The notes below the pieces were generated by a model. It did not search any database. It saw only the letters and a list, made by a program, of their open reading frames with translations, and was not told the origin of the DNA. Below are positions 3,411 through 53,899 of a stretch of 64,000 bases of DNA, one piece after another. The stretch is from Schizochytrium sp. TIO01 (Eukaryota > Protista > Bigyra: Labyrinthulomycetes), in the NCBI GenBank assembly GCA_004764695.1, contig SMSO01000014.1, positions 2,971,648-3,035,647 on the forward strand, given 5' to 3'. The position numbers and the translations under genes are program-made. Each line of letters opens with the position of its first letter. Position 1 is the stretch's first letter.

Positions 3411-3567
<157 letters not shown>

Positions 3568-3875
3568 TCCTTCTAATAGAAATCTTCTACAATCACTCTC
3601 ATTTAAGTGCTAAAGAGAGAGAGAGAGAACGATAGGCATTGAGAAGAAGGAGAAGAAACAAGCCCACGACTACGAGCCGCTGGGAAGGAGGCGAGCGGCG
3701 ATACCCCGTGTCCTCCGCCTGGAGCAGCGCATGGCGGCGTACGCGGGGTGCGGCGGAGGCTGCTGCCTGGCGGCCAGCCAGCCCTCCTTGGGGTCCGCAG
3801 CGGTGGAAGAGCACATCATCGCCACCTCCGTCATCATCGCAGGCTTTTCGTCACCTGCCGCTTTTGCTTTCTCTG

Positions 3876-4121
<246 letters not shown>

Positions 4122-32371: not shown

Positions 32372-35300
32372 CTACGAAGACACACGCCCAGAGTCATTTT
32401 CAGGAGGACGCATACGTACGATCTTCACATCAGACGCAGCCGAAACAGAAGACACATCGTGGGGCGTCAGCAAAATATACTGTCTCATATTACCGGTCTC
32501 AGACGCTCGCCGGGCAGCTTCCACAATAAGCTCCAATGAAATCTTACGATAATCTTGATCCATAAAAACATCGAACTCATCCATCACACGCCACGGAGTT
32601 TGTATTGCCTCACCAAGAGCCATCAGAAACGAAAGCGAGGTAAAAGACGACTCACCTCCTGAAAGTTGGCCTGCATCTTTAACAGAGGTATCTTGACCTT
32701 CATCCTGGCTCATATGGGTATTTGCAGTCTTGTTCCAAGTAAAATTCAAAGCTTTCTCCTTGTCGTCGAAATCTACTGTGCCAGAATGGTTCCGATAAGA
32801 TAGATTCTGGTCAAAGAAACGTTGGATTCTCGTTTTAAGAAAGTTCTTAAGTTGCCTAACGTTTAATTTACGTTTTCCCCTTCCATTCTCCACTCGTTCT
32901 TGTACAACAATGTGAAGTTTGATTTGATTCTTTTCGTAGGATTTACTCTTTTTCTCGCGAGTAATCTGCTTCTCCAATTGTAACTTCACTACATCTAGAT
33001 CAACACCTTCGTATTCCATGCTGACTCTCTGTTTGTCAGCTTGCAACGATTGCTGAAATGTCCGAATGTTTGCATCGGCTTGGCCAGAAGTCAAGTCTGC
33101 CGGCACATCTTCTTCAACGCCATCAGTGTACGCTAACGCTATCTTCTGAGCTTGATCATATCTATTTGATTCATCTCGGTGCTTTTTATCAGTCTCGTTC
33201 ATTCGTTTCTCTGTTTCCTCTTTCTTGGATTTGGCGCGCTCCAAAGATGCAACCACATTAATCGAACTTTGCTTGATCTTGTCCAACTCGTTCTGAGCGT
33301 CCTGCAGAGCAATAGCCAACTGTTGGAGCTTCTCTTCCACAACACGTTGTTTCTCCTGTACAGGCTGAAGCTCATGTGCAATGGATTCTTCGTCTCTTGC
33401 AAAGCGCTCTCGATCCATCTCCAGAGTCGTGATTTCGTTATCGAGATTCTGGATCTGCTGAGAAAGACTCTCCCGCTCAATTTCAACTTCATCATCATTC
33501 TTCACTTTTTCGTCCGTCGACAAAATCTGTTTCTGTAGCTCCTGGATCTCTGTCTCGAGCACCAACTTGCGCTGTCGGGTCTCGCTTATCCCTTGTTCAA
33601 GTTCTCCGCGCTTTTGATTCGAGTTTCGTATAGTTGCATCAATTTGTTGTATCTGCTGTGAGAGCTGCCGCATTTCCTTCTCGGTATCTTGTAGATTATT
33701 GCGGAGCGAGGTCTCCAGCTCTCGAGTATCTTCCACAAGCATCGGCGTCTTGTTGCTGCGACCAAAATATGCCTGCTTGTACTCGTTGCCGTTCTTACGC
33801 AGCTGATACGTATTGGCTTGCATGTCAAGCATAATACTCAAATTCTTGGGCTTGTGACGAAAGGTCACTTCTTCTGCTACCCTGCTCGACTCGCAAAGAC
33901 CAGTGGATTCGATCTTCGCCATATCCAACAACACGTTGAACACGTTGGGGTTGTCGGTCTTGATAATGTCCATCATGCATACAACACTGTCGCTTTGGGG
34001 GCGAAACGCGTTCTTATCAACTCCAGGATATCTTTCAGAAGCAAATTTGCGAATCAATACATTCGGCGCAGGGATGTTAGCCTGTCTGCACAGACTCTTG
34101 AGTATGGCATAGTCGTTGTTATCGAACAACACGAGACGATTGATTGCGTTTTTCAAATGAAACTCCACAGGGAAGCGCCACTTCTGATCGCTCAACGAGA
34201 TGTTGAGACCAGTATGGATAGGAGCATACTTGAATCTGGACTTGTTCTGCTCAATTAGACGTAAAACCTTTTGCATCTCACGACCAAAGCATGATGTGCG
34301 GTCATGGCTAGAGGCTCTCCCTTCGATGGGTGCAAGCGCTGTAAGTATGTCTTTTTTTTCGCGCTTCTTGCGATCGAGTTGTTCTTTCAGTCTAGTCAGG
34401 TTGGGAGTGTGAATATTGACATGTTCTTCAGAGAGCTGGGTAAGTTGAGCTGTGAATGCTTCACGCTGGCTGGATGTCTCGTCTCGCTCCTGGCGTTTCT
34501 CGTCCAACATGCTTCGAAGTTGCTTGGCTTCGTTGTATGCGGTTTCATTCATTCGTTTGGCATCCATGGCTAGCTTCTCACGTTTCTCCTCACAGCTGCT
34601 GCGGGCGTACTTGTGTGACTCTATAGTTCTCTCTGTAGCAACAGTTCGTCTTTTGGCCTGACGTAAGCGTTCCATGTAAGTTTCCATAGTAAGTTTGATG
34701 CGTTTCATCTCGTCGTCAAGGTCATTCTTCTCGGTGTCGAGTTTGGTGACTTGGTCCTGAATGCGAGGAGCGTCTTTTTGTGCGTGTTCAACCTGTGCCT
34801 GGAGGTGTTGTACCTTTTCCTCGCGTTCTTTGAGCTTGGCTTGCAGCTTTTCGAGCAGTGTGGCAGAGATTTGGACTTGTTGTCGAATATCCCGAACTTT
34901 GATCCAAGTTTTCTGTCGCATAGCCTTTTTGAGGTCCTCTTCTTGGTTCTCAAGTCGTCGAATGCGACCCAAACTGTCTTCTAGGAGCTTGCACTTTTTC
35001 TCAAAGTTTCCTAAGTTAGCGACACGTTTTTCGAGAGATCCGTTGCCAGACTCGAAGGACTTGAGTTGATGCTCAAACATGCTATTAATGGCAGCAAGAT
35101 GTGTTGCCTGCATGAAGATCTTATATTTCTCCTTAGGAGAGCCATGTAAAAAAGTCTTGCTGGTTTCCTGATCAAGAATACAGGATGGGTTGTCGACGTA
35201 AATATTGAACCAGCGAACAATTCTAGTCACTGTTGTTCTATTTCTAGAGATGACCTTTTGGGTCTTGGCATTCATAATTTTAAACGAAGAAGAGCCCGAC

Positions 35301-36010
35301 ACTCTAAGGGTTCTCTCTATACGAATTTGTTCGCCATAGGACTTGAACTCGAAGGGAAAAGGTCCGACGTTACAAAGCTCAACAGCTACAGTTGCATCAG
35401 AATTGCTTCCATGGCGAATAAGGCTAGAAAGGTTAGCGCCACGACTTGTGTTACGCGCTCTCAGGCCGAGACAAATTTGAAGTGCTGCGACAATAGCGGA
35501 CTTTCCTGATCCGTTTTGCCCGGTAATGAAGTTGATGCTCTTATTGAAGCTGATTCGGAATCGTCGGTGGCACATGAAGTTAGTGCACTCGATAAGCATG
35601 ACTTTGCCACAATCGTCTCGGATCATTTCTGAAGGAAGTGGTACACTGTGGTCGTTCGCATCTCCATCTTCGTTAGAGCTAGATATTGGACTGCCGGGAT
35701 AATGCTGAGTATTGCTGTCTTGTGTAGCGTCACTATCTGGTGCCTGTACTGGAAGCTGTTTTGTACCGCGGCGTGTTGCGATGTTGGGGGTGTTGGAGCC
35801 GCTGGAGTTGGGTTGGTGGTCGGTGCTAGGAGTTTCGAGTCCCCTTTGACAGTGCTCCAGGGGACCCGGAGGAGTTATAGATTCTTCGCGCTTGTGTTTC
35901 TTTCTTGGATGCATTGCATCACAGGGGGGAGACTCGCTACTATCCCCAGTCGATGTAGACGAGCATCTACCCTGAAGTACTTCAACCTCGTCGCTGGAGT
36001 CTGAGCTCAT
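32372..36010 (-). CDS. SMC6: Structural maintenance of chromosomes protein 6, copy A
   Basis: NFMCH, Walker A GQNGSGKS, Q-loop LDQ, coiled coils and hinge, signature LSGGESSF and SMC6-type MDEFDVFMD. First ATG is at 36010. Confidence 0.93.
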   Translation of the reverse strand: MSSDSSDEVEVLQGRCSSTSTGDSSESPPCDAMHPRKKHKREESITPPGPLEHCQRGLETPSTDHQPNSSGSNTPNIATRRGTKQLPVQAPDSDATQDSNTQHYPGSPISSSNEDGDANDHSVPLPSEMIRDDCGKVMLIECTNFMCHRRFRISFNKSINFITGQNGSGKSAIVAALQICLGLRARNTSRGANLSSLIRHGSNSDATVAVELCNVGPFPFEFKSYGEQIRIERTLRVSGSSSFKIMNAKTQKVISRNRTTVTRIVRWFNIYVDNPSCILDQETSKTFLHGSPKEKYKIFMQATHLAAINSMFEHQLKSFESGNGSLEKRVANLGNFEKKCKLLEDSLGRIRRLENQEEDLKKAMRQKTWIKVRDIRQQVQISATLLEKLQAKLKEREEKVQHLQAQVEHAQKDAPRIQDQVTKLDTEKNDLDDEMKRIKLTMETYMERLRQAKRRTVATERTIESHKYARSSCEEKREKLAMDAKRMNETAYNEAKQLRSMLDEKRQERDETSSQREAFTAQLTQLSEEHVNIHTPNLTRLKEQLDRKKREKKDILTALAPIEGRASSHDRTSCFGREMQKVLRLIEQNKSRFKYAPIHTGLNISLSDQKWRFPVEFHLKNAINRLVLFDNNDYAILKSLCRQANIPAPNVLIRKFASERYPGVDKNAFRPQSDSVVCMMDIIKTDNPNVFNVLLDMAKIESTGLCESSRVAEEVTFRHKPKNLSIMLDMQANTYQLRKNGNEYKQAYFGRSNKTPMLVEDTRELETSLRNNLQDTEKEMRQLSQQIQQIDATIRNSNQKRGELEQGISETRQRKLVLETEIQELQKQILSTDEKVKNDDEVEIERESLSQQIQNLDNEITTLEMDRERFARDEESIAHELQPVQEKQRVVEEKLQQLAIALQDAQNELDKIKQSSINVVASLERAKSKKEETEKRMNETDKKHRDESNRYDQAQKIALAYTDGVEEDVPADLTSGQADANIRTFQQSLQADKQRVSMEYEGVDLDVVKLQLEKQITREKKSKSYEKNQIKLHIVVQERVENGRGKRKLNVRQLKNFLKTRIQRFFDQNLSYRNHSGTVDFDDKEKALNFTWNKTANTHMSQDEGQDTSVKDAGQLSGGESSFTSLSFLMALGEAIQTPWRVMDEFDVFMDQDYRKISLELIVEAARRASETGNMRQYILLTPHDVSSVSAASDVKIVRMRPPENDSGRVSS

Positions 36011-36342
36011 GAGGGGTCGTGGCGATCTACTGTTCGTCAAGTTTCCTCAGAAAGCAGCACTGGTTGATTCTGGTGCAGTGTTACTCGGCTTTAGATTGTT
36101 TGCGGGGTTCCGAGGGGCGTGAGACTGGGTGAGGCCGGGTGAGCTGTTGCTTGTGATACTGTTTTGGATCAGCTTTCGATTTATGCTTTGAAGCATCCGA
36201 AAGAAGGCGTGCTCTCTGTTTCATCTGTTAGCTTTCTGCAGATAGGGAGAACTCTATTTGTAGACTGAGAGCGCTCGCTCTCAAGGGAGCAAAGGGAAAC
36301 CTGGACACCCTGATGTAAGTAGTAATGTTTAATTAGACGTCC

Positions 36343-36389
36343 CTTAGTAGTACCTAGGTCATAGTAGTACCTACTCAGGTACTACTAAG
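36343..36389. repeat. Perfect 13-bp inverted repeat enclosing a third direct copy
   Basis: cttagtagtacct (36343-36355) pairs with aggtactactaag (36377-36389). An internal tagtagtacct lies at 36362-36372. Confidence 0.85.
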
Positions 36390-36798
36390 CCTGGCTCTTC
36401 ACAACATTATTATGTTTGGTTGCTGACACTTCGCTGGGAGTGAAAGAAGCACTGCTAGTCGCACTTCGCTGTGTTTGTAAATAGGTGAGCGGTGTCTGTA
36501 TAGGTTCTATTCCATTTCCTTCCGCTCTCGCTGGCCAGAGATTGCTCATAAAAATGTTTTAACTTTGGTTGAAATGCAAACCAAAACTGTAGCCGGTCTT
36601 TTTAGAAGACGTAGAACTTGAAGCGCCGCCACGGATCGTCTTTTGTTTTTGCCTTTCTTTCTTTCTTTCTTTCTTTCTATTTTATTGCTTTAAAAAAATC
36701 CATCTCATTGGTCATATCATTAGGTTTTAAATTTCACAAAGTATCGAAAACGATTCACTTTTTAGTAAGACGATGAGTTTCACATACATTAGTTGATT

Positions 36799-38730
36799 CT
36801 ATTCGTTTCCTGGGCCTGATGAATCGAACAAGTTGTTCGTTATAACACGCTGGTTAAATACACGAAAAACTCTTTCTGAGCAAACAGGCCCAAGTCGTCT
36901 TGACGTCTTAGAAATGATAACATCTTGAAGATGTCGAGCTTGCTGTTCCTCAGGTATTCCTCGCAGTTGATTTTGGTAGAGACGACACAGAGTTCGAGGA
37001 GTCGCAAATTGCTTTGTGAGGGCCTCTGCCATGGCTCCGCTTATGCCTTTTATTTGTTTTAATTGTGCTGCAAATATCTCTCCTACGGTTCGTAGTTTGC
37101 CTTTAGCATTTGCCAAGGAGAATGCTTCGTAGGTGCGGCCGTGATTTATGGTGGATCTCAACCATTCATCACAACTTGCATTTACAGTCAGGTCTGCAAT
37201 TATGTAGTGCATCCGAACAATGAAATCTAAAGAATCCCGAAAGCTTTCAGTATGGACGAGGGTGATTCCGTCTCGAATTTGAGTCCTTGCCATGGCAGTC
37301 CGTAATGCCAGAGGTTTGATACTTGTTTGTTGAGAAGGATCTCCTTCTACAAGATAGATGACTCTCTTCAAGCCGCATCGCTGTAGGCGATACTTTTGTT
37401 CTTTGTACCTGTTGTCCTTGATCGAACTAGCTAAGTCAGCGACCTCCTTTCTTTCAATGATGTAATCAAGGACGTACTCTTTTTTATTTTCCAACCGACT
37501 TCGTACAATCCACATAAAATCTCCTAAAGACAGCGATCGGGTTTCAACATTTGGCACTTGCTCGAGGAGTTTGCTATGAACAACAGAGCGATCTCGTTTT
37601 TTATTTTCTCGAGAGTCTACCAGGAGGATCAGCTCCCACTCTGGATGCTGACCAACCCCCCTCCCAAACGTTTTCTTGATACCTGATAGCGGCTTTGGTT
37701 TTAACGTTTGAAGACAAATCGGCGACTGTGCAAAGGATTGCGAGTTCTCCTTATATACATTATTCGCGAGTTCGCCGCTAAAGTTCATTTGAGAAGAAAC
37801 CATCGGTTTAAGTCCAGAAGACGAAGAGGAAGATTTTGTGTGAGCTTTCGTTGCCAACAGGGAGCAACTGTCCTCAATGATTTCAATTTCATCATCGTCT
37901 TCTTCAGCTTTGTCTGTTTCTTTCTCCGCAATCGCAGAACCACCATACTCATACGTTAGGCTTGATGTTTTGGGTGGAGAATCTTCCAAAACTGATGCTC
38001 CAGGCAATACCGATTGAAATGGAGGTTTACTCTGGGCTCCATGTTCGACAAGCTTTTGTTTGTGTATATCTCGTGCGAAAGAATAGCCCTGATCAGTAAG
38101 CTGTATGAATTCTACGCTAGTTTCTGGGCTCTGAAATCGTTGCAGATAGCCTTCATTTTCTAGTCTTTTACAGTACTCAAATACGCGTTCTGTGCTTGGC
38201 ACTGTCAGATTCCGCTCACGGCGAAAAGTTTGCACATTTGTAGCTACTATGTCATAGGCCAAAGATTCCCTTCCTGTTCCGGCAGAATAAATACCCAAAA
38301 TCGTCGCGTAACCTAGCGTGCCACTGCTCAACGGTACCTTGCTTCTACGACGTTTTGGGCTTTGACCAATATGAATGCCGCCGTCGTCACAGGAATTGGC
38401 ATTCGAGCTAGGTTTGCGCTTGACAGGATTCCCACTTAGATTCGACTCGCCTGGAGTGGCTTGAGAAGCAGTCACATTTAGATGCGAAACCCGCAGATGT
38501 TCACATCGTGCTCGGTATAGCATTCCAGCGGACACTGTGCCTATACCGTGCACTCTGCGAAGGTCATCCTCTGTTCGTAGCTCTTCTGGGAAATTAGCAA
38601 GTGACCGTCGAGCGTAGCGAAGGCGGAGCGCTCTCTTCGAGCTCTTGTCCCTCAACTCCTCCTTGAAAATCTCACGCGAAAGCCAATCAACGAGACATTG
38701 ATTAGCCTCCACGAGCGCTCGTTTCCCCAT
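36799..38730 (-). CDS. MUS81: Crossover junction endonuclease MUS81
   Basis: N-terminal HhH (RVHGIGTVSA), a winged-helix-like segment, ERCC4 nuclease LLVDSRE...LGDFMW...IERKEVADLASSIKDNRYKEQKYRL...IYLVEG and C-terminal HhH (QIKGISGAMA). First ATG is at 38730. Confidence 0.92.
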   Translation of the reverse strand: MGKRALVEANQCLVDWLSREIFKEELRDKSSKRALRLRYARRSLANFPEELRTEDDLRRVHGIGTVSAGMLYRARCEHLRVSHLNVTASQATPGESNLSGNPVKRKPSSNANSCDDGGIHIGQSPKRRRSKVPLSSGTLGYATILGIYSAGTGRESLAYDIVATNVQTFRRERNLTVPSTERVFEYCKRLENEGYLQRFQSPETSVEFIQLTDQGYSFARDIHKQKLVEHGAQSKPPFQSVLPGASVLEDSPPKTSSLTYEYGGSAIAEKETDKAEEDDDEIEIIEDSCSLLATKAHTKSSSSSSGLKPMVSSQMNFSGELANNVYKENSQSFAQSPICLQTLKPKPLSGIKKTFGRGVGQHPEWELILLVDSRENKKRDRSVVHSKLLEQVPNVETRSLSLGDFMWIVRSRLENKKEYVLDYIIERKEVADLASSIKDNRYKEQKYRLQRCGLKRVIYLVEGDPSQQTSIKPLALRTAMARTQIRDGITLVHTESFRDSLDFIVRMHYIIADLTVNASCDEWLRSTINHGRTYEAFSLANAKGKLRTVGEIFAAQLKQIKGISGAMAEALTKQFATPRTLCRLYQNQLRGIPEEQQARHLQDVIISKTSRRLGPVCSERVFRVFNQRVITNNLFDSSGPGNE

Positions 38731-40048
38731 CCCTCTACAGAAGCAAAGCTTCGGAGGCTGCAAATATCCTTTTCCTGCAAGTTATCGCAAAGCTAAATTG
38801 TCTACCACTCATAAGAACTTGAGGCCCAACATAAATTGGCGCTCCTGCAACGTGAAAACACCTTCTCCTGTGCTCTCGATGGGCTTTCTGCTGCTCTCAA
38901 TTGAGTTTTGGTTGTAAGGGTAGTACTATCCTACCAATGTACATAGGGAGGGTAAATAAGCATGATTGACTACTTGCTACCTACGTAATACTAGCAAGTG
39001 TCTCAAAATAATTATAATGCAGTAAACATAAAAATACTCGGCAGAGGGTTCCTCATGGCAACCTACATTTAAAAAGAGAATGGAATTGAGGGTAAAATAA
39101 GAATCAAGCTTAATACTTGATCCACATTCTAATATATGATATTGGCAATAAAAACTTAAATACACACCATATTTTAATTTCAAAAATAAGAAAAAGACGT
39201 CAACTGTAGTAGGCTTATTCGACTGCAAGTGGTTGATTTACAATATTGGCGTCATGCCGTACTTTTGTAAAAATTAAGGAAGAAAATAAAGATTAAGTTC
39301 TACGCAATTAAAAGATTGAGAGTCAGCTTGTCATTACTCGTCTTGATTTATATTAACACTTCTTTCATATTTGCTTTTCTCTCAAGACCAAGATACCATA
39401 CTTAGTAAAGGCAACTAGTAGAAGAAATGATATATATATATATATATATATAATTATCGCCAACGGTTCAATGTTGCTGGACTACATATCCTCTTTGAAA
39501 AACTCTATCTCACGATTGATGAGAACAGGTATTGGGAATTATTCAATTTTCTAGTTTGCCTGTGTCGATGTGTTCTTAGGGGTAAGCAATAACAGAACCT
39601 ATAATATTCGATCCGTCCTTGAAACCTGCCAAAACTATCGAAGATCTCATTCCTCACGTCTTGAATGCTGGTTTACTTAAGTGTTGATTCCGGTGTTCGA
39701 CAGCGGCCAATTCTCAATACTTCTGGTCCGTATAACCAAAGTATTTTATTTTACTACAACAAAACCCTCAACATTCAATGCGAATTGAGGAGAATTGAGA
39801 TGAATGGACGGCAATATCGAATCAATATACATTTGCCTGCTGCTTTCGATCAGTTCCGTCACTTCTTCCTGATATAATACAACAAAATATTAGACCAACT
39901 CTTTTTCACCTCGTACTAGTGAATGTGAAGAAATCCTTTAATGGTAAGATAACAAGTAAAATTAAAAATCTATCACTCTTGGAATTCCCTGCCAATGTAA
40001 CATAACAATCGTTATCTTCGAACACTGTCTGCGAAATTACCAAATCAA

Positions 40049-43000
40049 CTACGTAAAACTGGTCTGCTGCGCACCTCCAAAATCAGTTTCAGGAGGACGC
40101 ATATGTACGATCTTCACATTAGAGGCAGCCGGAACAGAAGACACATCGTGGGGCGTCAGCAAAATATACTGTCTCATATTACCGGTCCCAGACGCTCGCC
40201 GCGCAGCTTTCTCAATAAGCTCCAATGAAATCTTACGATAATCTTGATCCATATACGCATCAAACTCATCCATCACAAGCCACGGAGTTTGCATTGCCTC
40301 ACCAAGAGCCATCAGAAACGAAAGCGAGGTAAAAGACACCTCACCTTCTGAAAGTTGGCCTACATCTTTAACAGAGGTATCTTGACCTTCATCCTGGCTC
40401 ATATGGGTATTTGCAGTCTTGTTCCAAGTAAAATTCAAAGCTTTCTCCTTGTCGTCGAAATCTACTGTGCCAGAATGGTTTCGGTAAGATAGATTCTGGT
40501 CAAAGACAAAATTGATTCTCTTTTTGAGACATTCCATACGCCGGTCCCTTTCCAAGTTCTGCTTCAACATTCCCGCCCTTTCTAGATCCAACGAAGCACT
40601 CTCGCATTTGATTTTCTCCTCTTCGAGCAGCTTACTATACTTCTGGCAAGTAATCTGCTTCTCCAATTGTAACTTGATTGCATCTAGATCAACACCTTCG
40701 TATTCCATACTGACTCTCTGTTTGTCAGCTTGCAACGATTCCTGGAATGTACGGATGTTTGCATCGGCTTGGTCAGAAGTCAAATCTGCCGGCACATCTT
40801 CTTCAACGCCATCAGTGTACGCTAACGCCATCTTCCGAGCTTGATCATATCTATTTGATTCCTCTCGGTGCTTTTTATCAGCCTCGTTCATTCGTTTTTC
40901 TGTTTCCTCTTTCTTGGATTTGGCGCGTTCCAAAGATGCAACCACATTGATCGAACTTTGCTCGATCTTGTCCAACTCGTTCTGAGCGTTCTGCAGAGCA
41001 ATATCCAACTGTTGGAGCTTCTCTCCCAGAGCATGTTGTTTCTCCTTTACAGGCTGAAGCTCATGTGCAATGGATTCTTCGTCTCTTACAAAGCGCTCTC
41101 GATCCATCTCCAGAGTCGTGATTTCGTTATCGAGATTCTGGATCTGCTGAGAAAGACTCTCCCGCTCAATTTCAACTTCATCATCATTCTTCACTTTTTC
41201 GTCCGTCGACAAAATCTGTTTCTGTAGCTCCTGGATCTCTGTCTCGAGCAACAACTCGCGATGTCGGGTCTCTCTTATCCTTTGTTCAAGTTCTCCGCGC
41301 TTCTGATTCGAGTTTCGTATAGTTGCATCAATTTGTTGTATCTGCTGTGAGAGCTGCCGCATTTCCTTCTCGGTATCTTGTAGATTATTGCGCAGCGAGG
41401 TCTCCAGCTCTCGAGTATCTTCCACAAGCATCGGCGTCTTGTTGCTGCGACCAAAATATGCCTGCTTGTACTCGTTGCCGTTCTTACGCAGCTGATACGT
41501 ATTGGCTTGCATGTCAAGCATGATACTCAAATTCCTGGGCTTGTGACGAAAGGTCACTTCTTCTGCTACCCTGCTCGACTCGCAAAGACCAGTGGATTCG
41601 ATCTTCGCCATATCCACCAACACGTTGAACACGTTGGGGTTGTCGGTCTTGATAATGTCCATCATGCATACAACACTGTCGCTTTGGGGGCGAAACGCAT
41701 TCTTATCAACCCTATGATATCTTTCAGAAGCAAATTTGCGAATCAATACATTCGGCGCAGAGATGTTAGCCTGTCTGCACAGACTCTTGAGTATGGCATA
41801 GTCGTTGTTATCGAACAACACGAGACGATTGATTGCGCTCCTCAAATGAAACTCCACAGGGAAGCGCCACTTCTGATCGCTCAACGAGATGTTGAGACCA
41901 GTATGGACAGGAGCATGCTTGAATCTGGACTTGTTCTGCTCAATAAGATGTAAGACCTTTTGCATCTCACGACCAAAGCATGATGTGCGGTCATGGTTAG
42001 AGCCGCCCCCTCTGAGGTTTGAAAGATTTGCGCGCATGTCATTTGCTTCGCGTTCCTTGCAATCAAGTTGTTCTTGCAGTCTACTCTTGTCGTCTTCGTG
42101 ACTGTGAATATTGACATGTTCTTCAGAGAGCTGGGTAAGTTGAGCTGTGAATACTTCTCGTTGGCTGGATGTCTCGTCTCGCTCCCGGCGTTTCTTGTCC
42201 AACATGCTTCGAAGTTGCTTGGCTTCGTTGTATGCGGTTTCATTCATTCGTTTGGCATCCATGGCTAGCTTCTCACGTTTCTCCTCACAGCTGCTGCGGG
42301 CGTCCTTGTGTGACTCTATAGTTCTCTCTGTAGCAACAGTTCGTCTTTTGGCCTGACGTAAGCGTTCCATGTAAGTTTCCATAGTAAGTTTGATGCGTTT
42401 CATCTCGTCGTCAAGGTCATTCTTCTCGGTTTCGATTTTGGTGACTTGGTCCTGAATGTGAGGAGCGTCTTTTTGTGCGTGTTCGAACTGAGCCTGGAGG
42501 TGTTCTGCCTTTTCTTCGCGTTCTTTGAGCTTGGCTTGCAGCTTTGCGAGCAGTGTGGCAGAGGTTTGGACTTGTTGTCGAATATCCCGAACTTTGATCC
42601 AAGGTTTCTGTCGCATGGCCTTTTTGAGGTCCTCTTCTTGGTTCTCAAGTCGTCGAATGCGACCCAAGCTGTCTTCTAAGAGCTTGCGCTTTTTCTCAAA
42701 GTTTCCCAAGTTAGCAAGACGTTCTTTGAGTGCCTTCTTGCATGATTGATAGTGCAGGAATTGACTCTCAAACCTGCGTTGATCGTCATCAAGATTTGTC
42801 GCACGCATGACGCTCTTATATTTGTCTTTAGGAGTGCCACGCAGAAAAGTCTTGCTGGTTTCCTGGTCAAGAATACAGGATGGGTTGTCGACGTAAATAT
42901 TGAACGAGCGAATCATTCTAGTCACTGTTGCTCTATCTCTGGAGATGACCTTTTTGGTCTTGGCATTCATAATTTTAAACGAAGAAGAGCCTGACACTCT

Positions 43001-44944: not shown

Positions 44945-45240
44945 TGGTCCTTCTTCATCATGGTTTCAACATCATGTTGATCAATCAGAAGTGGTATTCA
45001 TTCACAGGAGCTTCAATTAAAGGACACAACCAATCGTTCCGTGATATTCAATAACAAATAAAAATATCATAGTCGAGAGGGGCTCACCTTCTCAAAGCGA
45101 ATATGCTGATCTGCAAATTTGTTTCTGAAAGATATGACGGAAATAAGAGAAAACATTTTCGCAGCCGAGCTACCAATGCTGCATGCATGGTGGGCGTTAT
45201 CGAAAACCGATGATCCAAATCTGGTCGATGAGTTGATAGA
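44945..45240 (+). pseudogene. Decayed, inverted SMC6 hinge-region fragment
   Basis: The + strand reads LHHGFNIMLINQKW..ELQLKDTTNRSVIFNNK*..ANMLICKFVSERYDGNKRKHFR..ACMVGVIE/TDDPNL. This aligns to SMC6 IHTGLNISLSDQKW..EFHLKNAINRLVLFDNND..PNVLIRKFASERYPGVDKNAFR..VCMMDIIKTDNPNV, with a stop and frameshifts. Confidence 0.85.
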
Positions 45241-46634
45241 TTGTACTATGCGCTCTCCCGAAGTTATCTTTGAAAGTTTGCTTATCTAGCAACTTTATCG
45301 TGCTTCTTCTGTAATCGACACTGCCAAGTTTTAACCTTTCTTTGAATATTGCAAAGTTGAAATTAGACTATGATGGCGTCAGCCTCCTCAATTTTTAATC
45401 TCCGAAAGTTCTCACAAAGATGGACTCAACACCTAAGTAGTTAGTTGACTATGGATGGTTCAATTTCAGAGATATAGAATTTGGGATTTCATAGTCCTAG
45501 CATTTGTTCTTATACCCACATTCTTTAATCGCATTGGAATTGACTACCAAGATACTGATAAAAAGAATTAGACATTGGGAGAAAGAAGGGAGACCAACTC
45601 TCTTGGCCAAAAGAATCAAAGAGGTTGGATAGGTTGGCTCCTTCTGCTATTAAATTCAAGATATTTACAAGTTAAAAACTACACAAGCAGAATAATGTGG
45701 TTATTCTTGACCATATCTAACTAATAGATAAAGCAAAATATTTCGCTCACTAAATAGAAAATAGTACAGTTAGTTAATGATTTTGATACTACGTCTAGAT
45801 GTATATTTACGATAGATTTAACACAGTGTTGTTTCGCTTCGAGAGAACGTCTTGCTTTTTATTTTATTTTTTCTTTTTTTCTTTTTATCAATAGTAATTG
45901 CTTTTCCTTCTGAAGGCAAGAATAGCCCACTTTAGCAAAAAGGCGAGTATTGCAATAAATTATTTTTTAGACACTTCGACTATCGCTAACAATGCTAACA
46001 ATTTAGAGCTCTTAGACCACAAAATATTTACTTTAGACTAGAGGACGCGATGGAAAAGGGCCGTACTAAGGTTTATTAAGTTTTCCTGTGTATAGGTAAG
46101 TCTGGACAAAGTTTGTAACATTCAGTCTTCATTAAAAACTTAACTATTCGTAGCCCGGAGATATAAGATGCGTGGTTTCTCATTTCTCGAAGGCTGGTGT
46201 ACTTTAAATATTGATTCGAATCCTCCTCATTCGCCAGTTTTATTTAACTTAATTTAAATGACTAGAAAGAAGATTTTTCATAACCATAAATATCCACCTT
46301 AGAAAATAAAATAAAAATTAGAATAAAGTCAAAATATATTATTCATCTATACGAGGGTTTTGAAACAAATGTATAGCTCCTTGAATTAGTAAAGGACATT
46401 AACCTGTTGAAATAAAGCATCTGCTTTAATCCAGCGTATCTATAAATTTCAAGCCAGCGAAAGTGCAATTCAACCTGTCTCTTCTAACTACCTCATCTCC
46501 AAAAAAGCAAGCAATAATGTGAAAAAAAGAAAAAAAAGTAGCAACAGTTATTCATAACTTCACACATTACACCGACCTAAACATCAAGGTTTTTTCGCAG
46601 ATCAGTTGAATTTTTGCTAATATAACCTAATCAA

Positions 46635-49600
46635 TTACGTCAAACTAGTCTGCTGCGCTCGTCCAAAGTCATTTTCAGGAGGACGCATACGTACGATCTT
46701 CACATCAGACGCAGCCGAAACAGAAGACACATCGTGGGGTGTCAGCAAAATATACTGCCTCCTATTACCGGTCTCAGACGCTCGCCGGGCAGCTTCCACA
46801 ATAAGCTCCAATGAAATCTTACGATAATCTTGATCCATAAAAACATCGAACTCATCCATCACACGCCACGGAGTTTGCATTGCCTCACCAAGAGCCATCA
46901 GAAACGAAAGCGAGGTAAAAGACGACTCACCTCCTGAAAGTTGGCCTGCATCTTTAACAGAGGTATCTTGACCTTCATCCTGGCTCATTTGGGTATTTGC
47001 AGTCTTGTTCCACGTAAAATTCAAAGCCTCCTTCTCGTCGTCGAAATCTACTGTGCCAGAATGGTTTCGATAAGATAGATTCTGGTCAAAGAAACCTTGG
47101 ATTCTCTTTTTAAGAAAGTACTGAAGCCGCGCAACGTTTTGGTCACGTATTTCCCTTCCATTCTTCATTTGATTTAGTAAACCACTGTGAAGTTTGATTT
47201 GATGCTTTTCGTGGGATTTACTCTTTTTCTCGCGAGTAATCTGCTTCTCCAATTGTAACTTGATTGCATCTAGATCAACATTTTCGTATTCCATACTGAC
47301 TCTCTGTTTGTCAGCTTGCAACGATTGCTGAAATGTACGAATGTTTGCATCGGCTTGTTCAGAAGTCAAGTCTGCCGGCACATCTTCTTCAACGTCATCA
47401 GTGTACGCTAACGCCATCTTCCGAGCTTGATCATATCTATTTGATTCATCTCGGTGCTTTTTATCAGCCTCGTTCATTCGTTTTTCTGTTTCCTCTTTCT
47501 TGGATTTGGCGCGTTCCAAAGATGCAACCACATTGATTGAACTTTGCTTGATCTTGTCCAACTCGTTCTGAGCGTTCTGCAGAGCAATATCCAACTGTTG
47601 GAGCTTCTCTCCCAGAGCATTTTGTTTCTCCTTTACAGGCTGAAGATCATGTGCAATGGATTCTTCGTCTCTTACAAAGCGCTCTCGATCCATCTCCAGA
47701 GTCGTGATTTCGTTATCGAGATTCTGGATCTGCTGAGAAAGACTCTCCCGCTCAATTTCAACTTCATCATCATTCTTCACTTTTTCGTCTGTCAACAAAA
47801 TCTGGTTCTGCAGCTCATCGATCTTCACCTCAAGCAACGACTCGCGACGTTGGGTCTCGCTTATCCTTTGTTCAAGTTCTTCGCGCTTCTGCTTCGAGTT
47901 TCGTATAGTTGCATCAATTTGTTGTATCTGCTGTGAGAGCTGCCGCATTTCCTTCTCGGTATCTTGTAGATTATTGCGGAGCGAGGTCTCCAGCTCTCGA
48001 GTATCTTCCACAAGCATCGGCGTCTTGTTGCTGCGACCAAAATATGCCTGCTTGTACTCGTTGCCGTTCTTACGCAGCTGATACGTATTGGCTTGCATGT
48101 CAAGCATAATACTCAAATTCTTGGGCTTGTGACGAAAGGTCACTTCTTCTGCTACCCTGCTCGACTCGCAAAGACCAGTGGATTCAATTTTCGCCATATC
48201 CACCAACACATTGAACACATTGGGGTTGTCGGTCTTGATAATGTCCATCATGCATACAACACTGTCGCTTTGGGGGCGAAACGCGTTCTTATCAACTCCA
48301 GGATATCTTTCAGAAGCAAATTTGCGAATCAATACATTCGGCGCAGGGATGTTAGCCTGTCTGCACAGACTCTTGAGTATGACATAGTCGTTGTTATCGA
48401 ACAACACGAGACGATTGATTGCGCTCCTCAAATGAAACTCCACAGGGAAACGCCACTTCTGATCGCTCAACGAGATGTTGAGACCAGTATGGACAGGAGC
48501 ATACTTGAATCTGGACTTGTTCTGCTCAATTAGATGTAAGACCTTTTGCATCTCACGACCAAAGCATGATGTGCGGTCATGGTTAGAGCCGCCCCCTCTG
48601 AGGTTTGAAAGATTTGCGCGCATGTCATTTGCTTCGCGCTTCTTGCGATCAAGTTGTTCTAGCAGTCTGGTCTTGTCGTCTTCGTGACTGTGAATATTGA
48701 CATGTTCTTCAGAGAGCTGGGTAAGTTGAGCTGTGAATGCTTCTCGTTGGCTGGATGCCTCGTCTCGCTCCCGGCGTTTCTTGTCCATCATGCTTCGAAG
48801 TCGCTTGGCATCGTTGTATGCGGTTTCATTCATTCGTTTGGCATCCATGGCTAGCTTCTCACGTTTCTCCTCACAGCTGCTGCGGTCGGCCTTGAATGAC
48901 TTTATCGTTCTCTCTGTAGCGACAATTTGTCTTTTGACCTGACGCCGGCGATCCATGTGATCTTCGATAGTAGAATTGATGCGTTTTATCTTGTCCTCAA
49001 GGTCATTCTTCTCGGTTGCGAGTTCGGTGATTTGATCCCGAATGTGAGGAGCGTCTTTTTGTGTGTGTTCAAATTGAGCCTGGAGGTGTTGTACCTTTTC
49101 CTCGCGCTCTTTAAACTTGGCTTGCAGCTTTTCGAGCAGTGCGGCAGAGGTTTGGACTTGTTGTCGAATATCCCGAACTTTGATCCAAGTTTTCTGTCGC
49201 ATGGCCTTTTTGAGGTCCTCTTCTTGGTTCTCAAGTCGTCGAATGCGACCCAAGCTGTCTTCTAAGAGCTTGCGCTTTTTCTCAAAGTTTCCCAAGTTAG
49301 CAAGACGTTCCTTGAGTGCCTTCTTGCCTGACTTGTAATATATGAATTGGCGCTCAAACATGCTACTAATGTCATCAAGATTTGTTGCACGCATGAAGAT
49401 CTTATATTTCTCCTTAGGAGTGCCACGCAGAAAAGTCTTGCTGGTTTCCTGGTCAAGAATACAGGATGGGTTGTCGACGTAAATATTGAACCAGCGAACC
49501 ATTCTAGTCACTGTTGCTCTATTTGTGGAGATGACCTTTTGGGTCTTGGCATTCATAATTTTAAACGAAGAAGAGCCCGATGCTCTAAGGGTTCTCTCGA

Positions 49601-50105
49601 TACGAATTTGTTCGCCATAGGACTTGGGCTCGAAGGGAAAAGGTCCAACGTTACAAAGCTCAACAGCGACAGTTGCATCAGCATTGCTTCCATGGCGAAT
49701 AAGGCTAGAAAGGTTAGCGCCACGACTTGTGTTGCGCGCACTCAGGCCGAGACAAATTTGAAGTGCTGCGACAATAGCGGACTTTCCTGATCCGTTTTGC
49801 CCGGTAATGAAGTTGATGCTCTTATTGAAGCTGATTCGGAATCGTCGGTGGCACATGAAGTTAGTGCACTCGATAAGCATAACTTTGCCACAATCGTCTC
49901 GGATCATTTCTGAAGGAAGTGGTACACTGTGGTCGTTCGCATCTTCATCTTCGCTGTCTGGATAGTCGTTCATACCATTGTTAGTGTGTATCTTTGGTTG
50001 AGACAGTTCATCTTGGTCACTTTGGTCACTTGTTTCGTTCATTTCAGTCTCACGTTTTACGATTGATTCCTCATCGTCGCTCAAATCGCGCCTCCGTTTT
50101 GCCAT
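46635..50105 (-). CDS. SMC6: SMC6 copy C, with a shorter and different N-terminal extension
   Basis: All SMC6 ATPase motifs are intact (GQNGSGKS, LSGGESSF, MDEFDVFMD). Confidence 0.93.
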   Translation of the reverse strand: MAKRRRDLSDDEESIVKRETEMNETSDQSDQDELSQPKIHTNNGMNDYPDSEDEDANDHSVPLPSEMIRDDCGKVMLIECTNFMCHRRFRISFNKSINFITGQNGSGKSAIVAALQICLGLSARNTSRGANLSSLIRHGSNADATVAVELCNVGPFPFEPKSYGEQIRIERTLRASGSSSFKIMNAKTQKVISTNRATVTRMVRWFNIYVDNPSCILDQETSKTFLRGTPKEKYKIFMRATNLDDISSMFERQFIYYKSGKKALKERLANLGNFEKKRKLLEDSLGRIRRLENQEEDLKKAMRQKTWIKVRDIRQQVQTSAALLEKLQAKFKEREEKVQHLQAQFEHTQKDAPHIRDQITELATEKNDLEDKIKRINSTIEDHMDRRRQVKRQIVATERTIKSFKADRSSCEEKREKLAMDAKRMNETAYNDAKRLRSMMDKKRRERDEASSQREAFTAQLTQLSEEHVNIHSHEDDKTRLLEQLDRKKREANDMRANLSNLRGGGSNHDRTSCFGREMQKVLHLIEQNKSRFKYAPVHTGLNISLSDQKWRFPVEFHLRSAINRLVLFDNNDYVILKSLCRQANIPAPNVLIRKFASERYPGVDKNAFRPQSDSVVCMMDIIKTDNPNVFNVLVDMAKIESTGLCESSRVAEEVTFRHKPKNLSIMLDMQANTYQLRKNGNEYKQAYFGRSNKTPMLVEDTRELETSLRNNLQDTEKEMRQLSQQIQQIDATIRNSKQKREELEQRISETQRRESLLEVKIDELQNQILLTDEKVKNDDEVEIERESLSQQIQNLDNEITTLEMDRERFVRDEESIAHDLQPVKEKQNALGEKLQQLDIALQNAQNELDKIKQSSINVVASLERAKSKKEETEKRMNEADKKHRDESNRYDQARKMALAYTDDVEEDVPADLTSEQADANIRTFQQSLQADKQRVSMEYENVDLDAIKLQLEKQITREKKSKSHEKHQIKLHSGLLNQMKNGREIRDQNVARLQYFLKKRIQGFFDQNLSYRNHSGTVDFDDEKEALNFTWNKTANTQMSQDEGQDTSVKDAGQLSGGESSFTSLSFLMALGEAMQTPWRVMDEFDVFMDQDYRKISLELIVEAARRASETGNRRQYILLTPHDVSSVSAASDVKIVRMRPPENDFGRAQQTSLT

Positions 50106-51557
50106 GTTGTGATTATCGAGATATATGCAGAACCCACACAGTCAATTTGAGAGTACTTGGCTTTGAGGCAAGGGTCCAAGGGTTAAATATATATCAGCAT
50201 ATGCAGGTTGATTTGCGCTGCCGTTGATATATATCTATCTATCTTCAATGTGAAGGTTTTTGACAAGCACACAGATGAGAGAAGCTATTTACTTTGACAA
50301 AAAGGTAAAGGTTTCTACAAGACGCTTTTGTCGAATCCACACAGACCAACAAATATTCAAGCCAGGTACAGTCGAGGATTGCAACCAGCCTATCCCCCAC
50401 CAGAGACACGCCCAGGAAGCACGCTCAGAACGTGCTTGTTGCGTGGCTGGGCCGGGTAGATAGATGATCTGCCTCTTCTCTGTATTTGCCAATGAAATAC
50501 TTACTGGTCAGGAGTGAACTAGCACTATCTAGTGAGAACATTATGATAATGAGTGTCTAAAGTTCCTTCACATTCCATGGTTAGGAAAGGCTTCGTATTA
50601 TAGAGACCGTGTATCCATCGACTCTGCGTATATCTCATCCTGCTATCCACGCGATGTTCTGCGTTCTGTTTAGCGTTCTTTCATACTAGCATCTGTGTAG
50701 CTAAATTAGTTATAATTGTGCAATAATACAGGACATGTATTTTTTATTTCATTAGCGAAACGACTAGAGCAGTAGGCTTGGGAAAAAACGTCGTTGAGGT
50801 CGATAGCTAAGCTTAGGAAGGTTCTGAGGCGCGGACAAGTAGGTTATACCGCATAAGTAGGTTAAAGTTGAGGATGGAAGTGAAGTATTTTGAGGTTTAA
50901 GTAGAGAATAGAGAGGGAAAGTCGATTGATTAAAGTGGGAAGGCAAGAGGGAAGAAATCAACGAAGAGGGAGAAAAGGAGGACGGCATAGTCGAGCGCGC
51001 GAGCTTCCGAGGCCGCGCGAGGTACCGCCACCGCTGCGCTACGATACCACGCTGCGGTAGGATCCGCCTCGATTTCCTAGTCTAGCCTCCCTTCGCCCCG
51101 CCATCTGCTTCCCTGTGGAGACCTCGCCGGTCTGCCCGAAGCGGACGGCTCAAGGATTAATTAGTGCCTCGAGGCAACTTTGCCCAGTTCACGTCTACCT
51201 CTCTCGCTTGACGTCGTGTACGGCGAGGACGAATTCGCGAGGGTCCATCATAGGGTTTGAGGTTTCATATCAGGATCCTGAATCCTCTCGGATATCGGTT
51301 TTTTATCTCGCTTGACAGGGCTGCGATTTCTTTTGTGGAGGAACGCCTTGCTTTTGAAATATCGATCTTTCAAATACAGTAGCGCTTCTTTTACTTCTGC
51401 GCCATCCGTTTGTACTGCGTCAGCATCAGAATCTACGTTTAGAACTTCTACTACTAGTCTTTTCCTTTGTTTACTTTGAAGGTGGACTAGTTCTGTAGCT
51501 TCAAACCTTTGCAGCTGATTCTGCGATTGGATATTTCGAGGATCACCACTTGCCAAG

Positions 51558-53899
51558 ATGTTCTATTCCGACATTATCTTAGCTAAGAAAGGCCCTTTGG
51601 GCAAAATTTGGCTTGCCGCACATTGGGACAAGAAAATCTCAAAAACGCAAGTTTTTCAGACCGACATTGAGCGTTCTGCAAGTAAGTTTGCCAATTATAG
51701 CTTGGTATACCCATCCAATTTTTCGTAATAAGATTAAAAAAAAAGAGACTCGAGGTATGAATTAAAGAATGCCTGACTAACAACAGCATGACATATGTAA
51801 TTAATTGTTTGTACACAGTGTCGATCAAAGGAATGGGTGTGCCTCTCGCACTCCGTCTTTCTGGCCACCTTTTGTTGGGTTTGGTGCGTATCTACCAACG
51901 TAAGGTGAAGTACTTGTTCACAGATTGCAGCGAGGCCATGGTCAAAATTAAAATGGCCTTTCGCCCTGGTGTCGTGGACCTTCCCTACGAAGAGCATGGA
52001 CAGCAGCAGCAGTCTGGAAATGCTGGCATCACAGTTGCCGAATTCGAGATGAACTACGATGACAACGACTTCGAGAATGTGGAGCCTCAGATCGACGAAT
52101 GGATGCAACAAACTCTTGCTCCACAAAATGTATCCCGTAATGTGGATATCACCTTGGAAATTACTCCTCGTGCTAAGGTGCGTGGATCACGTGGATCTCG
52201 CAGCTCCCAAAGCAGCGTTGGCCAGCAAGCTGGAGACAGCGATGACGAAGAGGATGAGGAGCAGGACTGGACCCCTTTCGAGTTTGATGGTGCTGAAAGT
52301 GCCGGATTTGATAGCGCCACATCTGTGGAGCAAGCTCGTGAGGAGCCAGATCGACGTACTAGTGTTGCAAGAGCTGAAGAGGGTGCCTCTGTCACGAAAT
52401 TCTCACCAGCAGCTCAACACGATGACGACGAGGAGGAGGATGTTCCGGCACGTCTCGAGGAGCTCTCGGATGGGAGTGCTCCTGCTGGAGGTCGCGAGTC
52501 TCTTCTCTCGCGCAGAAGATCAAGTATGGCCGCAAGCAAAACTCAAGACGACATCAACGTTGCGATGGACTCTGACGATGATGATGGTGCTTTCAACGTG
52601 GCTGCGATGGATGACGATGACGATGACGATGATTATAACGAGGATGCGGAGGCTACCAAGGTCCGCAAGGTTAACGAAGAAGTTGATGAAGAGACTAAGG
52701 CTGCATCCGCTACTGCGATTCCACAAACTCCAGCTCTGACCACGGAAATGGTTCAAACAGTAGTGGAGGTGGATGACGATGAAGACGAGCCTAAGCGCAA
52801 GAGAACCAAACGTAAGAAGCGTGTATCCCAACCTGACGAAGATGTGGAGGGTGGAAAACGCAGGAAGCGCCGCCGTGCGGGCGCTCTTGAGAAAGTTACC
52901 TCTAAGAAAAATCTTAGCATTGAACCTGAAAAGCACACCAAGTCGCGTGTGCTTAGCCGCCGGCGCTTAGCAACCCGTGCTATGGAGGAGCACGGCATTC
53001 TCGCAAGCCGCTTGCTTTTCCAGGATAAGCCTACAGATTTCAAGACTGGGCTGTCTATGTGGTCTATTGGAGGTCTTTCGGAGGAGGTCGCAGCCACCTT
53101 GAACGCGCACACTCAACAGGAGCTCCCGTATCCTAAACGTAAGAAAACAGCGATCTCTGAAGAAGTTGAAGATACCGAGGCTGTCCGTCGCGCCTCTATC
53201 TCTGTCGATAGCGAAGATGTTCCAATGGGCTTTGACGAGGCCTTTGAGGAGGGGCCTTTGGTGGAGCGCCGTGCCAGCCACCGTAGTCGTCGTTCGACCA
53301 TGTCTGCGCCTCGACCTGTCCTTCCGGAGGCTGAGGACGACGATGATGATATTGCTGGATCAATGCCCCAGGATGATGATGATGACGACGACGACCGTGA
53401 TCGGGCGATTGGTCTCGAGGTCGCTGAAAGCGCCTCAAGGTCCTTGTCTAAAGGCCGCGTTTCGGTGGGAGGCCCTAAGCTTGATGATGATGAAGACGTC
53501 GTCGTTGAGACCAGAGATTCTGATGACGAGTCTGACGCTCCCGTGCCCATGGTCGAGTCTGAAGAGGAGGCTGAAGGTGAGAGTGAAAGCGAAAGCGAAA
53601 GCGGCAGCGAGAATGAAGACAATGATGAGGAAGGTGAACCTTCGAGTGAAGCCCGCTGGCATAAACGTACTGCAAACATGCTTCGTCTCTGCCAGGGCGT
53701 TCTTGAAAACACGGATTCAATCACATACCAAAGCTTGGCAGAAGGAAAGAACAAGCGCACAGTGGCAAGTTGCTTTTTTGAGATCTTGCAGCTCAAGACA
53801 TGGGACCGCATTGATCTCCATCAAGATGACCCGTACGGTCTAATCCAGATTGCGCGGGGTCCTAAGTTTGACGATGAAATTCCCACAATCAACAAGTAA
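51558..53899 (+). CDS. RAD21: Cohesin alpha-kleisin of the RAD21/REC8 family, 2 exons (51558-51681, 51819-53899)
   Basis: Exon 1 [26 protein letters not shown]... is spliced in frame (GTAAGT 51682 to CACAG 51818, branch TGACTAAC) to [24 protein letters not shown]-terminal winged helix [26 protein letters not shown]. ExxR separase-like sites SVEQAR and DTEAVR. Confidence 0.93.

Follow-up and report, generated by a model that had tools for sequence, protein, structure and literature searches.

In the labyrinthulomycete Schizochytrium sp. TIO01, three copies of SMC6, normally a single, slowly evolving and essential gene, lie in one cluster with the nuclease gene MUS81 and the kleisin gene RAD21. 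The cluster belongs to a 64,000-nucleotide stretch of contig SMSO01000014.1 (assembly GCA_004764695.1, positions 2,971,648 to 3,035,647), which is the whole stretch of DNA analysed here and is called the window below; coordinates are counted from its first nucleotide. All five intact open reading frames (ORFs) listed for the cluster in an initial annotation were found at their coordinates: SMC6-A (32372-36040, reverse strand; 1222 codons, first ATG at 36010), MUS81 (36799-38763, reverse strand; assigned by Pfam), SMC6-B (40049-43735, reverse strand; 1228 codons, first ATG at 43705), SMC6-C (46635-50105, reverse strand; 1156 codons from its ATG, with a short acidic N terminus of its own) and RAD21 (51788-53899, forward strand; a Rad21/Rec8 kleisin by Pfam). 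Transcript-derived database proteins fixed the gene models of MUS81, which encodes 643 amino acids without an intron (38730..36802), and of RAD21, whose full protein of 735 amino acids is encoded by two exons on the forward strand, 51558-51680 (41 amino acids, the start of the Rad21_Rec8_N domain) and 51818-53899. The ATG of SMC6-C at 50105 and the start of RAD21 exon 1 are divergent and 1,452 base pairs (bp) apart, matching the head-to-head arrangement at about 1.45 kb described initially. The earlier statement that no unrelated gene is recognisable inside the cluster also holds after Rfam, tRNA, tandem-repeat and Pfam scans of the locus, the first three of which returned nothing relevant.

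The five genes belong to ordinary families of chromosome repair. The three SMC6 proteins are full length and align to SMC6 chains in the PDB from end to end (E = 1.9e-68 to 2e-52, residues 136-1217), with the same queries reaching SMC2 at 5e-10 and SMC5 at 1.7e-4. In the database search the top matches carry the name SMC6, the best named one coming from Hondaea fermentalgiana (43% identity) and the next from other labyrinthulomycetes, and an AlphaFold2 (AF2) model of SMC6-C (mean predicted local distance difference test score, pLDDT, 78) has the expected head, long antiparallel arm and hinge. MUS81 has an ERCC4 domain (7.6e-30), an N-terminal HHH_8 domain (5e-8) and a C-terminal (HhH2) EME1-MUS81_C domain (8e-8) in Pfam, its catalytic GDx(n)ERKxxxD motif is intact (GD 403-404, ERK 426-428, D432), and its Hondaea orthologue is itself named MUS81. 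In its canonical domains, intact catalytic motif and single copy it resembles the MUS81 of MUS81-EME1/Mms4, but it differs in being embedded in an SMC6 array, in a linkage that is kept in Hondaea and in an upstream 8-mer that it has in common with genes of the Smc5/6 ring.

RAD21, searched with exon 2 as the query and with the database transcript protein P0250 as the full-length model, resembles cohesin RAD21/SCC1. Its N-terminal domain is split between the exons (51.9 bits in exon 1, 70.3 bits in exon 2), its C-terminal domain matches at 1.2e-11, and its best named matches are RAD21 orthologues across eukaryotes; no unusual feature was detected in the protein, and it is its position by SMC6 that is notable. 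One MMETSP transcript (P0128, 944 amino acids) joins RAD21 residues 1-568, at 99% identity, to the domain of a PP2A B56 regulatory subunit (PF01603); this is a chimera of the transcriptome assembly or else a read-through or alternative transcript. MUS81 and RAD21 are both 99% identical to transcripts of MMETSP0958/0959, which we take to be libraries of Aurantiochytrium limacinum ATCC MYA-1381. The headers of these transcripts (P0247, P0250) give TAXON_ID=87120, the number of the fungus Rhizopogon burlinghamii; that of A. limacinum is 87102, and the digits were probably transposed. The 99% matches make it very probable that the genome is that of A. limacinum or of a closely related organism.

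Searches of the genome (64.07 Mb in 37 contigs) revealed that SMC6 alone is expanded among the SMC genes and that all three of its copies lie at this locus. SMC5 is single (1099 amino acids, contig 6), and the four remaining hinge-bearing SMC genes, SMC1-4, are single-copy and dispersed over the genome. NSE4, the kleisin of Smc5/6, is a separate single gene of 336 amino acids on the same contig as the window (C13:2901871-2902881), 101 kb from SMC6-A; such proximity has a chance of about 0.3% per specified gene and, with about ten candidate genes checked, is marginally notable. A MAGE/NSE3 gene and zf-Nse (NSE2) candidates are on other contigs, and EME1 is represented by one weak candidate on contig 34. 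The NSE1 profile PF07574 had no match in a six-frame search of the whole genome, which does not prove absence; introns or sequence divergence may have hidden the gene. Besides MUS81, the only gene with an ERCC4 domain is XPF-like and lies 1.15 Mb away. The Rad21_Rec8_N profile matched only the RAD21 of the window, on its two exons, and no second Rad21/Rec8 (REC8-like) paralogue was found in the genome by profile search; as the sole gene of its kind, RAD21 is thus the cohesin kleisin rather than a spare one for SMC6. Apart from the copy number of SMC6, each gene of the cluster is the sole housekeeping representative of its family, and the triplication of SMC6 amid single-copy SMC genes is lineage-specific and unusual.

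The linkage itself extends to relatives. In Hondaea fermentalgiana, MUS81 (GBG23952.1), SMC6 (GBG23953.1) and RAD21 (GBG23954.1; EukProt P000478-480 for the trio) are on one 762,420-bp contig, and the consecutive accessions GBG23952-23954 indicate that the three are direct neighbours in the annotation, MUS81 and RAD21 having one SMC6 between them. Relative to the gene order here (SMC6-A, MUS81, SMC6-B, SMC6-C, RAD21), copies B and C stand in the ancestral slot and copy A lies beyond MUS81. In a more distant relative sequenced by the Joint Genome Institute (JGI), whose SMC6 is 35% identical, SMC6 (P0002) and RAD21 (P0134) are each placed on a 127,740-bp contig and so share a scaffold; the oomycete Achlya hypogyna has them on separate contigs (20,513 and 67,365 bp). 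Together, the Hondaea trio and the linkage in the JGI-sequenced relative indicate that the block is ancestral at least within thraustochytrid-like labyrinthulomycetes, so that the synteny that was proposed initially as a check is present, and the view that the MUS81-SMC6-RAD21 linkage is not accidental is supported. A scan of metagenome contigs with the SMC6 of the JGI-sequenced relative (P0002) returned only an unrelated 1-kb fragment. In NCBI and UniRef, the Hondaea RAD21 orthologue GBG23954.1 (P0129; 743 amino acids, 47% identical, with both Rad21/Rec8 domains) bears the name 'NADH-ubiquinone oxidoreductase chain 2', apparently in error.

Divergence and exchange among the SMC6 copies

SMC6-A, SMC6-B and SMC6-C are 86-88% identical in protein and about 92.8% identical in DNA. 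The repeated unit is the gene body, to which copies A and B add a common upstream stretch of 137 bp and a shared Ser/Pro-rich N-terminal extension of 122 amino acids. The intergenic spacers are non-homologous, with the sole exception of a hinge fragment of SMC6 in the spacer between B and C (44953-45241, forward strand), an inverted relic of a fourth copy that spans 290 bp, contains four stop codons and retains about 66% DNA and 34% protein identity to the SMC6 genes. This decayed fragment implies at least one further, older SMC6 duplication. The only other matches of the B-C spacer in the genome are the SMC6 genes themselves, and the possibility that the spacer is a dispersed repeat was rejected on this ground.

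The triplication also survives the check for an assembly artefact that was raised initially. Contigs of one DNA run (X2) and of three RNA-like runs (X15, X17 and X20) were mapped on 34950-40900; the runs containing this stretch come from twelve studies and carry ten organism labels. An artefact was rejected because the copies are ~7% diverged in DNA and because the independent DNA run X2 has segments specific to A, to B and to C.

Divergence is distributed very unevenly along the gene. The ratio of nonsynonymous (dN) to synonymous (dS) divergence is 0.60-0.70 between pairs of copies and 0.55-0.66 per lineage, and dS varies from 0 to 0.5 along the length of SMC6. The identity of the odd-one-out copy switches in blocks (160 runs, against 243 ± 8.7 after shuffling; 0 of 10,000 shuffles reached the observed value), and these block-wise changes, together with the variable dS, point to gene conversion or unequal exchange among the tandem copies. 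Since conversion homogenises copies, mean divergence underestimates the age of the duplications.

Two patches stand out from this homogenised background. The first, specific to A (35006-35149, reverse strand; amino acids 298-345), lies where the head passes into the first arm helix, in the N-strand of the neck, and has a dS of 0.37-0.39 against both B and C, compared with 0-0.1 elsewhere. The second, specific to B (40502-40663, reverse strand; amino acids 1025-1078), lies where the last arm helix runs into the C-lobe of the head, in the C-strand of the neck, and differs from A and C with a dS of 0.40-0.50 and a dN of 0.26-0.36, including 46 B-unique changes in 50 codons. In the AF2 model of SMC6-C, the A patch falls at the head-arm transition and the start of helix 243-341 and the B patch falls in helix 945-1013; the patches left unhomogenised correspond, as modelled, to both strands of the coiled coil next to the head, the neck. 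SMC6-A is thus derived in the N-strand of the neck, and SMC6-B in the C-strand of the neck and the head C-lobe. In other SMC complexes, the neck is the place where the kleisin N terminus and loader or regulator factors bind.

Of the three copies, SMC6-C most resembles the outgroups, Hondaea among them, in the N- and C-lobes of the head, in both neck strands and in the hinge, and it adjoins RAD21, as does the single SMC6 of Hondaea (by consecutive accessions). In copies A and C, the Walker A motif (GxxGxGKS), the signature LSGGE, the Walker B motif (DEFD) and the D-loop match the invariant columns of a 40-sequence alignment, and the two copies have essentially no private replacements at 105 conserved sites, defined by conservation in 13 or more of 16 diverse orthologues of SMC6. 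SMC6-B has six private replacements at these sites (F309V, R1059Q, G1130E, R1153L, V1160A and F1161Y), of which G1130E is in the signature motif, R1153L is next to Walker B, and V1160A and F1161Y are in the D-loop. Its ABC signature (40340-40354, reverse strand) reads LSEGE, against LSGGE in A, C and all other sequences of the alignment; judged by the signature glycine and the D-loop residues, copy B does not have the features of a catalytically competent SMC6. Its frame is nevertheless open despite 124 private substitutions, for which the neutral probability of no stop codon is 0.005 when substitutions only are counted and gene conversion is ignored. Copy B is thus SMC6 by descent but probably has no normal ATPase, and from its motifs it would be maintained but impaired at the ATP site that it forms with SMC5.

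Compared with known Smc5/6 systems, the likeness lies in full-length SMC6 proteins and in the single SMC5, single NSE4, NSE3/MAGE gene and zf-Nse candidate of the same genome. Lineage-specific SMC6 duplicates are also annotated elsewhere, as SMC6A and SMC6B of plants, names that occur among the database matches. The differences from the usual Smc5/6 are the three tandem copies plus a relic, the ongoing gene conversion, the conversion-resistant neck patches, one copy with a mutated signature and D-loop but a kept frame, and the lack of an NSE1 match in the six-frame search. No publication on thraustochytrid SMC6 turned up in our literature searches.

An upstream octamer and signs of transcription

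All 8-mers were enumerated in the 600 bp upstream of seven genes, and one of them, AATCAACC, occurs upstream of six of the seven (SMC6-A, SMC6-B, SMC6-C, MUS81, NSE4 and SMC5), always in the sense orientation. At SMC6-A it is at 36062-36069 (reverse strand), 22 bp upstream of the ORF and approximately at the 5' end of the RNA-like contigs; at MUS81 it is at 39231-39238 (reverse strand), about 500 bp upstream of the ATG; and at SMC6-B it is at 43757-43764 (reverse strand), within the 137 bp of upstream homology to copy A. The SMC6-C site, at 50206-50213 (reverse strand) and about 100 bp upstream of the ATG, has a context that is non-homologous to the A and B sites, and the SMC5 site is at -305 from the ATG. 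The octamer is not present in the 600 bp upstream of RAD21, nor in a total of about 42 kb around SMC1-4, XPF, the EME1 candidate, NSE3 and the NSE2 candidate. The window holds six sites, four of which are those upstream of SMC6-A, SMC6-B, SMC6-C and MUS81.

When six random 600-bp segments were drawn in a permutation, any 8-mer was found in five of them in 2 of 3000 trials (sense strand) or 15 of 3000 (either strand). Genome-wide, AATCAACC has 2,882 occurrences, against 1,794 for the reversed control. Neither of the classical cell-cycle motifs, MCB (ACGCGT) and E2F (TTTSSCGC), was present in any upstream region examined. These patterns suggest that the genes of the Smc5/6 ring and MUS81 may constitute a regulon, whether they are linked or not, a lead of moderate strength that was found post hoc. 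The proposal of a co-regulated cluster, put forward in the initial annotation, is accordingly compatible with the octamer at the three SMC6 genes and MUS81, and at the unlinked SMC5 and NSE4, but does not extend to RAD21, which is without it.

The two further sites in the window are at 56088-56095 (reverse strand), in the gene-poor stretch of 2.6 kb that follows RAD21, where the ORFs have no Pfam match, and at 9802-9809 (forward strand), about 1 kb upstream of a lysine-methyltransferase-like ORF (10831-11784).

Each of the three RNA-like runs contains a contig of about 2.2 kb that matches MUS81 (36693/36728 to 38884/38949), and depth in the spacer between MUS81 and SMC6-B is close to zero; a MUS81-sized contig together with near-zero spacer depth is consistent with RNA. 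RNA-like contigs also cover the 5' end of SMC6-A (35634-36060/36099) and the B-specific neck patch (40373-40699), and a loose contig end at 35672 runs on into sequence identical to 49954-49983, in the 5' region specific to SMC6-C. Contigs of runs guessed to be RNA thus suggest that all three SMC6 copies are transcribed. Within the MUS81/SMC6-B spacer, 39463-39859 is covered by contigs at a depth of 2-4 in two of the RNA-like runs, which may represent a long 3' untranslated region of SMC6-B, a non-coding transcript or DNA carry-over.

Possible roles of the SMC6 copies

The initial annotation had read the cluster as a candidate SMC-nuclease-kleisin module of genome surveillance. Its linkage is conserved and its SMC6 expansion is real, which supports that reading in part, but the module as such is not supported, because the kleisin is that of cohesin, MUS81 is the sole canonical resolvase of its kind and the ancestral SMC6 was single. 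RAD21 as the kleisin partner of SMC6 was rejected, since it is the only Rad21/Rec8 gene and NSE4 is encoded separately, and MUS81 is a single canonical XPF-family resolvase rather than a dedicated nuclease subunit comparable to JetD of Wadjet. An ancestral state with one SMC6 likewise argues that the combination of three SMC6 genes, a nuclease and a kleisin is no co-evolved unit.

The likeness to Wadjet (JetABCD) consists in the close company of three kinds of gene, encoding an SMC ATPase, a nuclease and a kleisin-family protein, and the Smc5/6 and Wadjet families both act on extrachromosomal DNA. We caution against pressing this comparison, because a Wadjet-like module combines an SMC, its own kleisin, a KITE protein and a Toprim-type nuclease as one unit, and that combination was not found. 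Instead, the kleisin of the locus belongs to cohesin, the nuclease is of the XPF/MUS81 family with no Toprim JetD, the cluster has no KITE (the KITE protein NSE3 is encoded on another contig), and the genes are separately transcribed eukaryotic housekeeping genes, sole copies except for SMC6, which was ancestrally one. The locus thus shows no sign of a bacterial-style SMC-plus-nuclease defence module.

The explanation that we favour, and hold to be rather probable, is that an ancestral MUS81-SMC6-RAD21 housekeeping block had its SMC6 repeatedly duplicated in place, that copies A and B became specialised and that the Smc5/6 genes and MUS81 possibly belong to a AATCAACC regulon. SMC6-C, the most ancestral-like copy and the one in the ancestral position by RAD21, would be the canonical subunit, and A and B would have been sub- or neofunctionalised and would compete for the one SMC5 and the one NSE4. 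Because the neck, by homology, binds the kleisin N terminus and loaders or regulators, three neck types (A with its own N-strand, B with its own C-strand and C with the shared types) would yield Smc5/6 rings that differ in their gate or regulator properties. Copy B, expected to be impaired at the ATP site to which SMC5 contributes its Walker A motif, would be no pseudogene but a variant that cycles slowly or regulates. The functional link among the genes would be the putative regulon of SMC5, the three SMC6 copies, NSE4 and MUS81, with no physical nuclease-SMC machine, and RAD21 would be a conserved neighbour without the octamer. In yeast, Smc5/6 and MUS81-EME1/Mms4 interact genetically in the resolution of recombination intermediates.

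Several observations weigh against this explanation. The octamer was found post hoc and its significance is moderate, and NSE3 and NSE2 are without it. The ratio dN/dS is below 1 everywhere, so that positive selection is not demonstrated, and coiled coils are weakly constrained in any case. The case for expression rests on assembled contigs of runs that are only guessed to be RNA, and the A neck patch and the B signature region are uncovered in those runs. The ATPase impairment of copy B is derived from motif knowledge. The adjacency of the three genes in Hondaea is read from consecutive accession numbers, and the conservation of the trio in two fairly close genera may reflect general synteny rather than selection for linkage. 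A search with the flanking cytidylyltransferase gave thousands of KdsB-like matches, and a Hondaea orthologue was not among the ten that were looked up.

The main rival is a purely neutral one, in which gene order is broadly conserved, redundant SMC6 duplicates are drifting, B is on its way to becoming a pseudogene and there is no co-regulation. It gains from the dN/dS of 0.55-0.66 on all three lineages, which suggests relaxed constraint, from the loss of invariant catalytic-site residues in B, from the dead relic fragment, which shows that copies do decay here, from the flank-synteny search, which recovered no Hondaea orthologue, and from the post hoc nature of the AATCAACC statistics. We consider it unlikely, although a serious competitor, because three ORFs of 3.5-3.7 kb are intact, with the low no-stop probability of B among them; because A and C are practically free of replacements at the conserved sites; because neck patches with a dS of 0.4-0.5 amid a homogenised gene indicate that the copies are old and the patches resistant to conversion; because copy-specific segments occur in the RNA-like runs; and because SMC6 and RAD21 are still linked in a relative with only 35% identity in SMC6. 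Were drift nonetheless the explanation, the locus would be merely a lineage-specific tandem duplication of a housekeeping gene in a conserved syntenic block.

An antiviral arms race would give the copies a different meaning, and we regard it as improbable. Here nuclear DNA viruses would have driven both the SMC6 expansion and the rapid change of the neck interface, and A and/or B would form an Smc5/6 that recognises or silences extrachromosomal viral DNA, or would be decoys for viral antagonists, with MUS81 as a possible co-regulated effector. In mammals, SMC5/6 is an established restriction factor against episomal DNA viruses, which counter it with antagonists, herpesvirus proteins among them (PMC9980727, PMC9371351, PMC13690197), and Aurantiochytrium limacinum has a persistent circular mirusvirus episome and an integrated copy of it (PMC12606086, 10.1101/2023.06.15.545109). 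It is conceivable, at a similarly low probability, that the derived paralogues, A and the signature-mutant B, arose from a conflict of host and virus and build variant Smc5/6 rings together with the one SMC5 and the one NSE4; these rings would trap the mirusvirus episome in the nucleus or silence it, or would lure away a viral antagonist of Smc5/6, and diversifying selection would have shielded the neck patches from gene conversion. Consistent with this, only SMC6 is expanded among the SMC genes, the divergence is concentrated at a protein-binding interface, the neck, and a maintained copy with a mutated signature fits a decoy or clamp role. However, nothing in the analysis connects the SMC6 paralogues to a virus, dN/dS is not above 1 in the neck patches, and the mirusvirus paper (PMC12606086) makes no mention of SMC proteins. 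Moreover, the trio with a single SMC6 predates the expansion, so that defence does not account for why SMC6 lies with MUS81 and RAD21, the essential housekeeping functions of the cluster have no other gene copies, and the identity of the strain as a mirusvirus host rests on the 99% match to the MMETSP transcripts, whose species is our assumption.

Life-stage paralogues, serving vegetative cells, zoospores or a cryptic sexual cycle in the manner of plant SMC6A/SMC6B or of meiotic cohesin subunits, would suit the 122-amino-acid extension and upstream region that A and B share and that are distinct from C, as well as the SMC6A and SMC6B names of several plants among the database matches, but are very improbable given that a single Rad21/Rec8 gene was found in the genome and no dedicated meiotic kleisin, that AATCAACC precedes all three copies and that segments of all three occur in the same RNA-like runs.

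If the copies have indeed specialised, as we favour, the locus offers a natural series of SMC6 variants, differing mainly in the neck and in one case at the ATP signature, that all share one SMC5 and one NSE4; such a series would be a natural test bed for the tuning of an SMC ring by its neck and its asymmetric ATP sites. The surrounding recombination and cohesion block, MUS81-SMC6-RAD21, is held together across labyrinthulomycete genera and comes with a candidate shared promoter element; to our knowledge, conserved functional gene neighbourhoods are uncommon in eukaryotes. Finally, a link to the mirusvirus episome that persists in the nucleus of Aurantiochytrium is unproven but can be tested. 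Should the antiviral explanation prove true, episome restriction by SMC5/6 would be an ancient eukaryotic immune function outside animals, and a genetically tractable protist-virus pair would be at hand for studying it.

Flanking genes and repeats

The genes on either side of the cluster are unrelated to it. One flank carries an isoleucyl-tRNA-synthetase-like gene and a cytidylyltransferase, and the other carries a coiled-coil ORF and a histidine phosphatase. No Pfam match was obtained for the small ORFs that separate RAD21 from the next gene. Far from the cluster, a long tandem array with a period of 8 bp occupies two blocks of the window (3401-3574 and 3864-4161). The cytidylyltransferase (30984-31655, reverse strand) is KdsB-like, of the CMP-KDO synthetase family, with best matches at 44-51% identity that include several CMP-KDO synthetases of about 250 amino acids, the usual bacterial size, and it may have been acquired from bacteria.

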